NCBI GenBank assembly: GCA_038496445.1
Contig: JALMLS010000064.1
Span: forward strand, 186,001-250,000
Source: Trichosphaerium sp. ATCC 40318
Taxonomy: Eukaryota; Protista; Tubulinea
Reading direction: 5' to 3'
Length of the DNA: 64,000 nt
A program made the position numbers and the translations under genes. Within the stretch, counting starts at the first letter, position 1. Each line of letters opens with the position of its first letter. Shown piece after piece: positions 58,990 to 64,000 of this stretch. The notes beneath the pieces were generated by a model. The model saw only the letters and a list, made by a program, of their open reading frames with translations. It was not told where the DNA came from and did not search any database.

Positions 58990-59331
58990 TGATGAGCATG
59001 GTGATGATTGGCACGTTTAAACGGACGCTTTATTGATGGTTGGCGCTGAACTACGCTCATTTTGATTAACGCGTTATGTTCAGCCTATTGCGAATCCACA
59101 ATGGTAGTTTGGCGCGTGTAGTGACAAACAACCCTAGTTGATGTAATCAAAGCCAAATGTTACACTGTCTTTGATTACCGCTCTATTGTGGAATTGGTGG
59201 CTTTTGTTGACTTTTTTTGGGCTGTACAAAAACCCAATTAACGCACTTGCCAAAGACACATGGCGACTGATTAACGGTTTATTGTTGTTTTATATACGTA
59301 CTTCTCGATAACAACTGGTTTATTAGCCTTT

Positions 59332-59619
59332 TTAGCACATGTCCATTGTTCGCCATCCTTGCTTTGATAGATCGTTCAATAGCTCTGAGTATATAGCATC
59401 GTAGTTTTTAAATGCGAATTTAGGACCCTCTGAAAACTCGACTGTAGGCGGATCTTCCAGCGCTTCACGCGTACCAACCGTATACTCATCGCCCCAGTCC
59501 TTGTTGCATGCTTTTAAGTCTATTTTGTGTTTTTTGCCTTTTGAGTCACTGTACTCAACGAATTCTTTTGTGACACTCACAATTCGTGCTTCTCCCTCCC
59601 CAATAGTTATTGTTTGCAT
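59332..59619 (-). CDS. Intronless 95-aa hypothetical protein
   Basis: Clean ATG-to-stop ORF, head-to-head (122 bp) with the COG0523 gene. Confidence 0.55.
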   Translation of the reverse strand: MQTITIGEGEARIVSVTKEFVEYSDSKGKKHKIDLKACNKDWGDEYTVGTREALEDPPTVEFSEGPKFAFKNYDAIYSELLNDLSKQGWRTMDMC

Positions 59620-59741
59620 GGTTAGCCTAATTCAACTGTTAAAAGCTGTAAACGACTCGTTTATGCAGAACTTGGTTGACTTTTTCGAACGAAAAATAAA
59701 ATTTGTAAAATCCTTTAACAGCGACTACAATAAACGCTCAT

Positions 59742-62700
59742 ATGGCCACTGAAATGAAGAAATTACCTGTTACTGTTTTATCTGGGTTTTTAGGCTCGGG
59801 AAAGGTTAGTAACAAATAAAATTACAAAATCATGTCAAATACAAGTGTTTTGTGTGCTATGGGCCTAAGATCGTAAAATCATAGATTACCAACTCTATTT
59901 CTCTCTTTTTCTCCGTTTTCATTCTTCTCATGCCTTTAGACTACGCTCTTACAACATGTCCTACGTAACAGAGAGGGTTTGAAGGTAAGTAATAACAAAA
60001 CCACGCTTGTAACTCATTTAAAAAGGTCGCTGTTATTGTAAATGATATGGGAGAGCGTAAGTAAAGCGGAGAAAACGTTCTGTACTTTGACACTTTTTGT
60101 AGTAAACATTGACGCTCAACTCGTTGGTGATGGCGCTTCACTCTCTCAGGTACGATCCAACGTAACGACAACGCTTAAAAAGGCTACCAGCGTTCAAATT
60201 TATCAATTTTCAAAAAAACTTGCTAAACTCAAGAAACAGGTTGAAGAAAAGCTTGTTGCTATGCAGAATGGTTGTATTTGTTGTACTCTTCGTGAAGATT
60301 TGCTTGAAGAAATCTCCAAATTAGCTCGCATGGGGAAATTCGACTATCTCCTTATTGAGTCTACAGGTGCGTTTACACGAAGGGTTGTAACTCAGTCGAT
60401 CATCAAGTTTGGAGTTTTATTTCTGCTTACAAATATTTTGTAAAAAAGTTTTTCTTTTTTCTTGTTTTTTCGACAAAAAACTCTGCCTTGCGCTGTTGTG
60501 TTATTATGGTTGTATTAACGCTTACGAATTAGGTATATCGGAGCCTTTGCCAGTAGCTGAGACTTTCACATTCGAGTCACCTTCTGATGATGGAACTGGT
60601 ATGATCACCAATTCATCACTAAGCGATATTGCAGAATTGGACACTATGGTACTGCTTTGGATTATGTGACCCTTCTTTCGGTTTTTCCCTTTTGTGTTAT
60701 TATTCCTTACTCTCCTCTTAGGTATCTGTTATCGATGCTTCTCGCTTCACAGAGTATTTGGATAGTATCGAAGACTTGAAAGCAAAGTTCGGTGAATGTA
60801 TGATTTCAAACAATTTTTTTCTCATTTTTGTTTCCTTCAAACGTGTCTTCTCATAGTACTCTCTTAGCGGCTGGTCCTGATGATGAGCGTACAGTAGCAC
60901 AATTGCTTATTGACCAAGTAGAATTCGCAAATGTTCTTCTCATTAACAAGGTAAGAAGCAGCTATCAGTCGGTTTGATTTGTTTCTGTCATATCACTTTC
61001 TTAATACTTACTCTTTAAAGACCGATCTTGTTACAAAAGAAGAGCTCAACAAAGTCATGGGATTGTGCAAGAAGCTTAACCCTGTAGCAAAGATTATTTT
61101 AACAAAATACTCTAAAGTACCTTTGAACAACATCATCAACACAAGTGCGTGATATATTTTTTTTTTCCATTTTTTTTTGTTCCAAACAGTTATTTTTATC
61201 AAGTTGTTCTATCACGTTACTTTCTAACCCTTTCTTCTCTTTAGAGGCTTTCAACTTCGAAGAAGCATCACAACATGCTGGATGGCTACAAGAGCTTCGT
61301 GGAGCACATGTACCTGAGACAGAGGTATTAAAAGGATTTGAAACAAAAAACTTTGATGCTAATTTACCTTTTTGTAGGAATACGGTATTTCTTCTTTCAT
61401 TTACAGAAGTTCCAAGCCTTTCCATCCAACTAGATTCTCCGTAAGTAACCCCCTTCCATCGTAAGATATTCTATGATCTCATTTGTACAAAAATAGGATC
61501 TGTTAGATGCCGGTATACCAAACGTTGTTAGATCCAAAGGTAGGATAGACCCACTCACTGTTTATCATTTTTTTGACTTTTTTTTAAAGGTTCCATTTGG
61601 CTAGCCCCAGAAATGACATTCCGCATTCAATTGAGCGGTGCAGGCAGTACGTTTAGCATTTTATAATTTTCCAGGCTCGTCAAGCCATCCTAAGTCAGAA
61701 GTGCTCCAAAAATTAACACTTTTTTTTCAAAAGAAAACTACGGTCTTGTAAATGCTGGTATGTGGTGGGATGCTATACCAATCGATGAAGTACCTGAAGA
61801 TTATGCTGAAGAGATTAAAAAACGTCTCGCTAGCTGTGATGAATACGGAGACAGACAAATTGAGGTACCTACCACAATCAAAATTGTTCATTTTCTTTTC
61901 CAAGTTTGTATTTTAATTTCTTGAATAGCTCGTTGTTATCGGCGCTCAAATGGATGAAGCTGTTGTTCGTAAGACGCTAGATGCTTGTCTACTCACAGAC
62001 GAAGAGATGAAGGCAGGTCCTGAGGCTTGGATGACATACCCTAACCCATTGGAAACTGCGTACACTGTAAGCCAAAAATCATTCTTTTTCTCTGAAGAAA
62101 GATTTCGAACTAACTTTGTTATAGTCTGGTACTCTTACTCCAGAAGACAAAGCATTGTACATGAATGCACAAATAAGCGTGTGGTATAAACAATTCGCAC
62201 AATTTACTTTTGATACAATCTCTTTGGAGTGTCCAAATGATTTCATCAATTGGTTACAAGAAGGTGCATTTTAAACGAATATCATTTTTTTTCGGATTTC
62301 TTACTTTGTTTTGATTTAGATCACCTTGAAGAAGACCAAATGGATACAGACGAAAAAGAGGTCCCTGAATTCCCTGATTTCGCTAAAGAAGTAGCAAAAC
62401 AAATAGCTGAATTTGGTGGTAAAGTAGTGCCAAAATTGAACTGGAGCGCACCTTCTGTAAGTTTTTTTTTCGAAAATAACCAAGAAAAATAACCAACTAC
62501 GAAACCATGAATCCCTTACATATTAACTTATCATTTCAAGGATTCCACAAAGCCTTTAGTATGCACAACACCTGCTGAGGTTTTCGGCTTATTAAAATCA
62601 TCAGAGCGTTCTGTACAAGACATAGAATGGTACACTCTTTTTTTTATTATTATTTTATGAAAGTAAACTTTTCTTTTTTTGATTTTATTTTTAACCATTT

Positions 62701-63475
62701 GTATAGGTTGCTCGCTCTTCACCAAGAAATTCACGAGAACACACCGGTACGTTTATAATTTATACATGCTTGAATATTTTGTGAGGCGTCAGTTCTCGAA
62801 CTCGCTTTTTTTTCTGTTTCGCTTTGGTCAGGCACTTTGTTAACTCTTTTTCTTTAGGATAACGGTGAATGTGATATACCTTCAGTTGTATTAAATTTGC
62901 GTAAATTTACACCAATCGATAACAACTTTGAGTTCAGATGCTTCGTAACCAATAACAAAATATCAGGTTAGTTTTTTATGACTTTCTATTTTCCTCTTTT
63001 TTTCTTTTTTTTCTGTTGTTTTTGGCAGTTCTTCTGGAATGATTTAATTGATTATTATTTTAGCTCTATGCCAGAGAACCTTGGTTATGGATAAACGTAT
63101 TGTTGACAACAAAAAGACAATCCATGCTGCAATATTCACGTTTTTTAACGACAAAATCATGGGCTCGAAAGTGCCTTACCCTGACTCTCATTGTATCCTC
63201 TGAACATTTTTTGAATTCATTTTTTTAAGTTGATTACATTGACCTCCTTGACTATGATTACAGTCATCCTAGACGTATACGTATGTCCAAAAGAATACAA
63301 GGTTACCATGGTTGATATTGGCGCATTCCATGATGCTGCTGAGGCTTTGTTATTCGATTGGGACCAACTAAATGTCTTGACACCTGAGACACCTGTTGAG
63401 TTCAGGATTATTGAATCTGAGGAGATGCTAAAAGAAATAAAACAACAACAAGAAGAAGAACACGATGATCATTGA
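59742..63475 (+). CDS. COG0523 (CobW/ZNG1-like) Zn-chaperone GTPase fused to CDC123-like ATP-grasp domain
   Basis: LPVTVLSGFLGSGK|TT, VIVNDMGE, NGCICCTLREDL, LIESTG|ISEP, INK|TD, RSKG, GDRQIE|LVVIG. Intron 62067-62124 joins ...PLETAYT|SGTLTPEDKALYMNAQISVWYKQF... to PKLNWSAP, LLKSS, FEFRCFV, LCQR, FILDVY, LLFDW. Confidence 0.8.
63193..63263 (+). other. Putative U12-type (minor spliceosome) GT-AG intron
   Basis: Donor GTATCCTCT; branch TCCTTGAC at 63245-63252, 11 nt before the end of the intron; splicing restores PDSH-F-ILDVYV. Confidence 0.7.
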
Positions 63476-63820
63476 GTAAGCTCAGGCTCAAAAAAAGAAT
63501 AGAAGAGAAGAGAAGAAGAAAGAAAAAGAGCAAAAAAAAAGTACTCAAAAAAACGATTTAAAGAAAAGTAAAAAAAAAAGTTTTTGAACGTTTTTTTCAG
63601 TTTCCAGACTACAAAATCAAAAAAAAACACAAATCATGTACAACTGATATGCCCTTTTAGAAAAAAATAGCACTATTTTTTTTCCACCGCGCATTCACAT
63701 CACATGATTTGGCTTTCTTTTTGAAAATTTTTTTCATCGAAATTTCCTTTTTTTTTCTTGAAATAAGTCAGAAAAAATTCATTATTAATCAGGTTGGTGT
63801 GGCCATCCTTCCTGTAAGAA

Positions 63821-63952
63821 TCACTGTGGTGAACGGGAGAAAAGCTCGGGGCATTTGACTGTGACCCAAAAAAGGCGGGCGAGGCTGTAAGACATATGCG
63901 TTTCAACATCTTTGTTATCCAATTGTTTCACAACAATGGATACTGTCGAACC
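63821..63952 (-). CDS. Possible terminal exon of a gene entering from the right edge
   Basis: Candidate acceptor followed by STVSIVVKQLDNKDVETHMSYSLARLFWVTVKCPELFSRSPQ* and A-rich downstream sequence; no domain recognised. Confidence 0.3.
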   Translation of the reverse strand, partial: GSTVSIVVKQLDNKDVETHMSYSLARLFWVTVKCPELFSRSPQ

Positions 63953-64000
63953 TCTTTTGTTATCAAACAAACAACATCAGGGAATTCTTCAAAAAAATCA

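Follow-up and report, generated by a model that had tools for sequence, protein, structure and literature searches.

In a 64,000-nucleotide (nt) stretch of the genome of Trichosphaerium sp. ATCC 40318 (contig JALMLS010000064.1, positions 186,001 to 250,000; this whole stretch is the window), we analysed a gene in which a bacterial-type zinc-chaperone GTPase of the COG0523 family runs in frame into a CDC123 domain. RNA contigs of three studies run in spliced form over the junction between the two halves, and one fused protein is very probably made. The N-terminal half is, as judged from its sequence, an intact ZigA-type GTPase, and the C-terminal half keeps the CDC123 fold with an altered ATP site. 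Since CDC123 acts on eIF2, a factor that eukaryotes use to initiate translation, we tentatively propose that the CDC123-derived module tethers the zinc GTPase to eIF2 and that zinc insertion is thereby coupled to eIF2 assembly.

Structure of the fusion gene

The window has a G+C content of 38% and consists of eukaryotic DNA with numerous short introns. Our gene model, assembled by hand and checked by script, comprises 22 exons with 2079 coding nt, which encode 692 amino acids (aa) without an internal stop. All 21 introns are bounded by GT..AG and measure between 41 and 166 nt. An earlier annotation made from the letters alone (the sequence-only reading) had placed the gene from the ATG at 59742 through 63475, and these coordinates proved exact; the EEEHDDH C terminus that it named is also the end of the 692-aa model. 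Since an in-frame stop lies four codons 5' of the ATG at 59742, there is no hidden N-terminal extension. The predicted protein has a mass of 79 kDa and, given an N terminus without a targeting extension, is predicted to be cytosolic. The gene and its parts are as follows:

59742..63475, + strand: whole coding region of the fusion gene (hand-built, script-checked model; ATG 59742, TGA 63473-63475)
Exons 1-11, + strand: 59742-59804, 59940-59984, 60026-60056, 60103-60149, 60240-60366, 60533-60648, 60722-60797, 60868-60950, 61021-61144, 61245-61324, 61378-61440
Exons 12-22, + strand: 61497-61539, 61590-61646, 61734-61864, 61929-62066, 62125-62263, 62320-62456, 62541-62629, 62707-62746, 62858-62966, 63064-63192, 63264-63475
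59742..62066, + strand: ZigA-type COG0523 GTPase (cobW and CobW_C), exons 1-15, residues 1-408 (from NCBIfam, tblastn and a joint alignment)
62125..63475, + strand: CDC123 (D123) ATP-grasp fold without C-terminal tail, exons 16-22, residues 409-692 (from Pfam, PDB and tblastn)
59784..59942, + strand: P-loop GFLGSGKT, residues 15-22, interrupted by intron 1 (from the sequence; column conserved in bacterial ZigA)
60270..60284, + strand: CxCC metal-binding motif of COG0523, here GCICC, residues 73-77 (from the sequence and the profile matches of exon 5)
62067..62124, + strand: intron 15, the junction intron, 58 nt, phase 0, GTAAGC...CTAAC...TATAG (RNA joint 62066->62125)
62161..62163, + strand: in-frame ATG (Met421), 12 codons into exon 16, the sole candidate start of a stand-alone CDC123
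62433..62456, + strand: KLNWSAPS, with Lys493 and Ser500 (from comparison with CDC123 proteins)
63311..63328, + strand: VDIGAF, with Asp640 and Gly642-Ala643 (from comparison with CDC123 proteins)
63476..63540, + strand: 3' untranslated region (UTR) up to the poly(A) site (from RNA contig ends)

The junction intron sits between residue 408, where the CobW_C homology ends, and residue 409. As the sequence-only reading had claimed, neither a stop nor a gap separates CobW_C from CDC123: there is no stop where the ZigA homology ends, and the 58-nt phase-0 intron at 62067-62124 has the predicted boundaries and CTAAC element, with its joint present in RNA contigs.

One spliced transcript under purifying selection

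We aligned Logan contigs from four sequencing runs (X1, X2, X4 and X5) to positions 59300-64000. Such contigs are blind to transcript starts, ends and levels, and rare variants are dropped from them; their splicing marks them as derived from RNA. RNA evidence across 62066-62125 had been named in the sequence-only reading as one way to check the fusion. The joint 62066->62125 (GT..AG) was found in X1, X4 and X5, which come from three studies; its shorter side spans 56, 137 and 137 letters. In X4, a 747-nt contig (record 8) holds exons 14-15-16-17 in spliced form from 61734 to 62456, and a spliced 799-nt contig of X5 (record 12) connects the GTPase part with exon 16 across the junction. Among the 21 introns of the model, at least 14 were seen as RNA joints, and on either side of the junction the contigs are at least 99% identical to the window. 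The 3' end is marked by 12 A as a loose end behind 63540 in X4 and by contig ends at 63530-63542. Since the spliced joint recurs in contigs of three studies, a fused mRNA exists. The tryptic peptide that spans the junction of the predicted protein is AGPEAWMTYPNPLETAYTSGTLTPEDK.

Two further features of the RNA alignments were observed. Contig depth is very high (450-1490) over 62911-63067, a T-rich part around intron 20, and over 63382-63538, which reaches into the A/G-rich 3' UTR. In addition, joints other than GT..AG connect T-rich introns (60471->61157, 60470->62999 and 61174->62997). Both look like low-complexity cross-matches at the 90% threshold rather than biology.

The strains from which the RNA contigs stem differ from the assembly at eight coding sites with nine alleles, and all nine are synonymous third-position changes. 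Five of these sites lie in the ZigA half (60269, 60763, 61783, 61804 and 62018) and three in the D123 half (62181, 62899 and 63424); at 62018 the runs carry different alternatives, A in X4 and G in X1 and X5. With about one quarter of random changes expected to be synonymous, such a pattern is very unlikely under neutrality. Since nine of nine differences are synonymous and they fall in both halves, the two halves are under purifying selection in the fusion frame. The halves also resemble each other in G+C content at third codon positions (0.36 in the ZigA half versus 0.35 in the D123 half) and in codon usage (cosine 0.89). The gene was also considered as a pseudogene, which the RNA contigs and the all-synonymous differences rule out.

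The GTPase half is of the ZigA type

ZigA is a zinc-metallochaperone GTPase of the bacterial Zur regulon and belongs to the COG0523 family. Searched as single exons, the N-terminal half matched Pfam cobW colinearly at profile positions 1-13, 52-92 and 130-152, and CobW_C at positions 1-17 (exon 11) and 74-94 of 94 (exon 15). Among NCBIfam families, ZigA (NF038288) came first for every exon tested, at colinear positions 58-389 of 390, with exon 15 covering positions 349-389. Exon 5 alone matched ZigA at 3.4e-20 and Pfam cobW at 4.6e-12. Six exons scored 15-72 bits each against ZigA, whereas the equivalog cut-off of 600 bits applies to whole proteins. Since a bacterial relative with 48% identity scores 489 bits and thus falls below this cut-off, the status of the GTPase half as a ZigA equivalog is doubtful.

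A scan of bacterial genomes with part of exon 5 yielded 80 loci. The spliced GTPase half matched bacterial ZigA loci in tblastn with 47-58% identity over ~400 aa. Several short exons were misplaced by MAFFT, and their alignment rows were left out after testing. In a joint alignment, the GTPase half was of the same length as 76 bacterial ZigA proteins, colinear with them from end to end and 44-56% identical (median 51%; the bacterial proteins among themselves have a median of 57%). Of 109 columns conserved to at least 95% in bacterial ZigA, 101 are kept, and the eight differences are mostly conservative. The P-loop (GxxGxGK[ST], here GFLGSGKT), the CxCC motif (GCICC), switch II (ExxG, here LLIESTG, residues 99-105) and the NKxD motif (INKTD, residues 194-198) are all present, as is the ETEEYGISSF...RPFHP segment of ZigA. 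By these criteria of sequence, we regard the GTPase half as a complete and intact ZigA-type COG0523 protein, which is apparently active.

The C-termini of bacterial ZigA proteins map to residues 407-420, that is, to the fusion junction. While the bacterial proteins stand alone, the Trichosphaerium sequence has 14 internal introns and host-like codon usage, lacks a stop and runs into the CDC123 domain. Contamination as a source of the GTPase half was considered as well, and is ruled out by these introns and the codon usage. A quick tree with bacterial ZigA as the only comparators placed the GTPase half within the bacterial spread, on a long branch, and paired it with locus L049 (support 96). 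Both are on long branches, and we flagged the pairing as a long-branch join. L049 is a ZigA-like protein (1797-2927) of unusual composition from a metagenome-assembled genome labelled Candidatus Peribacteria; the pairing may be false, or the L049 contig may not be bacterial.

Two other COG0523 GTPases invite comparison. The first is ZNG1/CBWD, with which the fusion protein shares the superfamily (cobW and CobW_C, CxCC), the predicted cytosolic location and the notion that the GTPase is tied to a single zinc client. ZNG1, which is eukaryotic, activates METAP1 and uses an N-terminal extension to bind the zinc finger of this client. In the fusion protein, only eight residues precede the P-loop strand, which leaves no room for such an extension, and client choice would instead come from the C-terminal fused domain. 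The sequence-only reading had called the GTPase COG0523/ZNG1. The family assignment stood, but the ZNG1 type was not supported: in comparisons with NCBIfam families and bacterial proteins, ZigA came first and nothing pointed to the ZNG1/CBWD type. The second is Mrf of mycobacteria, a COG0523 GTPase by which a hibernation factor is recruited to ribosomes at zinc shortage and which thus acts on the translation apparatus. Among NCBIfam families, its own (NF047431) took second place for exon 5, exon 15 and the bacterial relatives, but with a much weaker match than ZigA (for the bacterial relative L089, 650 bits for ZigA versus 213 for MRF). Unlike the GTPase studied here, Mrf is not fused to its partner, and its target is the ribosome instead of an initiation factor.

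The C-terminal half has a CDC123 fold

Pfam D123 (PF07065) was matched by exons 17, 18, 20 and 22 at positions 59-99, 109-133, 151-178 and 221-289 of 300. Exon 17 matched human CDC123 (PDB 8phd) at 1.5e-7 with 34 bits over 39 residues, and exon 22 gave a weak match to S. pombe Cdc123 (PDB 4zgn). A local profile built from fungal CDC123 and the exons of the window scored 299 bits on the spliced protein, a value that is partly circular. From a metagenome scan we obtained 28 CDC123 loci (L001-L028), all intronless and fungal-like and fetched as loci of 1.5-20 kb, to which the D123 half is 27-37% identical in tblastn (E down to 4e-33). In 28 of 28 the matched part is a single tblastn segment, and by their best database relatives these loci are ascomycete-like. 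At the start of exon 16, TLTPEDKALYMNAQISVWY can be aligned to LPFPPITKSHILNCSFHSWY, the conserved segment at the N terminus of fungal CDC123. There is therefore almost no linker between the halves, and Met421 lies inside the domain.

A search of representative proteins with exon 22 (69 aa) gave one match, P0001, a 183-aa CDC123 fragment on a 760-nt contig. Burroughs et al. defined the R2K signature and the catalytic positions of CDC123 (PMC4431377), and we compared these positions in P0001 and in 120 CDC123 proteins from fungi. Almost all comparators come from ascomycetes; outside this group, the comparison draws only on residues of human and S. pombe given in papers and PDB alignments. With classical CDC123 (R2K.1) the D123 half shares, besides the fold, Lys493 (human K104) within PKLNWSAP, the ExR motif E568-F-R570 within EFRCFV, the (F/L)DVY motif, Asp626 (human D233) and Asp640 (human D246), the Asp of the DIN motif.

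A zinc GTPase that may dock on eIF2

Our best explanation, which we hold as possible rather than probable, is that the CDC123-derived module serves mainly as a docking and assembly platform for eIF2. Docking would bring the ZigA-type GTPase to nascent eIF2, where zinc would enter the zinc-binding domain of eIF2-beta in a GTP-dependent step that is coupled to heterotrimer assembly. The sequence-only reading had likewise inferred a Rosetta-stone link between zinc delivery and eIF2 assembly, which we keep as a hypothesis. A second zinc target could be the zinc knuckle of eIF2-gamma, which occurs in archaea and also in eukaryotes. Such coupling would matter most when zinc is scarce. By analogy, MRF (NF047431) is a precedent for a COG0523 relative that works on the translation machinery at zinc shortage. 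CDC123 binds domain III of eIF2-gamma and promotes eIF2 assembly (PMC8844851), and aIF2-beta carries a zinc-binding domain (PMC6412873).

Several observations on the D123 half weigh against docking on eIF2. First, Ser500 replaces the second Lys/Arg of the R2K signature, which is Lys in 120 of 120 fungal comparators and corresponds to human R111, a residue that contacts ATP (PMC12860950). Second, Gly642-Ala643 stands in place of the Asn-Pro of the DIN motif (human N248), with Asn and Pro present in 121 of 121 comparators; the S. pombe counterpart of VDIGAF is IDINPF in the PDB alignment. The RNA contigs are unchanged at both deviant codons, with VDIGAF covered by X4, X5 and X2. Third, the fusion protein ends ~15 residues past the EFRII strand and lacks the SAHKLPKDVVD-like tail, (H/R)(K/R)LPKD, which the fungal proteins carry and P0001 carries in part. 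Since two ATP-site residues are replaced, the sequence suggests that the ATP-grasp cycle of the D123 half is weakened. DIN is an ATP-binding sequence, and a yeast DIN mutation as well as Arabidopsis D251N weaken eIF2-gamma binding and eIF2 assembly (PMC10898606); for this reason the D123 half may bind eIF2 poorly. Finally, in none of the 28 fungal-like metagenome loci does a COG0523 gene lie beside CDC123. The complete CDC123-like domain claimed in the sequence-only reading was thus borne out as a fold (D123 positions 59-289 of 300) but not as a functionally complete enzyme, given Ser500, Gly642 and the missing tail. The two replacements at the ATP site also suggest that the nucleotide switch has moved to the GTPase.

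The same deviations would fit a D123 part that is a degenerate paralogue and has left eIF2 to recognise or modify another client. The ZigA part would then supply zinc to that client or be regulated by the D123 part, while a canonical CDC123 encoded elsewhere would serve eIF2. Two otherwise invariant ATP-site positions are replaced and the tail is lost, and multi-copy, fast-evolving relatives of CDC123, for which other targets were proposed, exist in unrelated amoeboid eukaryotes (Burroughs et al., PMC4431377). The sequence-only reading had offered a divergent CDC123/R2K paralogue with a new client as an option, and on the side of divergence Ser500, Gly642 and the missing tail favour it. However, the D123 half is closer to classical CDC123 than a fast-evolving copy should be, with its 27-37% identity to the fungal proteins and the 34 bits of exon 17 to the human one. 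Overall, we consider a degenerate paralogue somewhat unlikely.

Alternatively, the fusion protein could act on translation as a zinc sensor instead of a zinc donor. The metal and GTP state of the ZigA part would then decide whether the CDC123 part holds eIF2-gamma or lets it go, and eIF2 assembly as well as global initiation would follow zinc supply. Here, Mrf is the closest analogy, and its second rank in NCBIfam is in line with it. With its ATP site weakened, the D123 half could accommodate a different switch, and eIF2 levels as well as the stress response are governed by the activity of CDC123 (PMC12860950). But the argument is one of analogy, and ZigA scores far above MRF; such a sensor is, in our view, unlikely.

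A different kind of alternative is that the locus yields two main products and the fused mRNA is minor. ZigA would then come from transcripts with intron 15 retained or with an early end, and CDC123 would start at the ATG at 62161 from an internal promoter. This ATG is in frame and lies near the start of exon 16, and the contigs could miss such transcripts given their blindness to starts, ends and levels. However, the ZigA part does not close with a stop codon: retention of intron 15 adds 41 unrelated residues before a stop at 62187-62189, which is inside the CDC123-coding exon 16. In addition, three independent runs were each assembled into the spliced form, and TLTPEDKALY, which lies 5' of Met421, can still be aligned to the N-terminal segment of the fungal proteins. 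Two main products are therefore very improbable. An assembly misjoin, a chance open frame or an annotation artefact can be dismissed almost entirely, since RNA contigs of three studies cross the junction with exact GT..AG splicing and match both its sides, and the halves are alike in codon usage and intron style.

Returning to the proposed docking of the GTPase on eIF2, one could extend it to other eukaryotes. eIF2 biogenesis would then need assisted metalation, and the fusion would be a Rosetta stone for it: a COG0523 GTPase and CDC123 would together serve the zinc sites of both eIF2-beta and eIF2-gamma, and separate COG0523/ZNG1-type proteins and CDC123 would cooperate likewise where they are not fused. 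This wider idea appears unlikely to us.

Occurrence of the architecture

The fusion is a new domain architecture made from two known families. The sequence-only reading did not know it from elsewhere, and our search of a library of papers likewise found none that combines Cdc123 with CobW or COG0523. Searches for the fusion outside the window rest on short exon queries and on word searches limited by query length, and their empty results do not show that it is absent elsewhere: a word search with the profile of fungal CDC123 and window exons brought up CDC123 of ascomycetes only, none of which has a Pfam domain besides D123; viral contigs, scanned twice, gave no match; and atlas look-ups returned D123-only clusters for exon 22, CobW_C-only clusters for exon 15 and no usable match for exon 17. 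A search with P0001 and exons 21-22 gave two matches. A word search led by an unrelated serine-rich protein of 853 aa, which moved the length filter to 469-1493 aa, brought up relatives of that protein alone and carries no weight on the fusion. In local simulations, mixed ZigA/CDC123 profiles could not rank diverged relatives above stand-alone bacterial or fungal proteins.

Neighbouring transcription

Head-to-head with the fusion gene, with 122 nt between the start codons, lies an intronless open reading frame of 95 aa (59332-59619, - strand). RNA contigs of X5 and X2 cover its region (59300-59645), and it has no significant match in Pfam (DUF4177 at E 0.027). On the other side, 3' of the poly(A) site, positions 63774-63983 are covered by RNA contigs of X4 and X5. 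A further transcribed gene therefore begins before the end of the window.

Implications

COG0523 zinc metallochaperones have few known clients: for ZNG1 of eukaryotes, METAP1 is to our knowledge the only one that is established, and bacterial ZigA is not known to have a settled one. In Trichosphaerium, a bacterial-type zinc-homeostasis gene, now fully intron-bearing in a eukaryote, is joined to a eukaryote-specific translation factor. Such an expressed and selected fusion points to eIF2 as a possible client of a zinc chaperone and leads to a concrete hypothesis, namely that eIF2 is metalated during its assembly or that its assembly is gated by zinc status. If the wider idea of assisted metalation in other eukaryotes is true, zinc metallochaperones would gain a second client, one that is central to translation initiation, and zinc supply would be linked to the integrated stress response.

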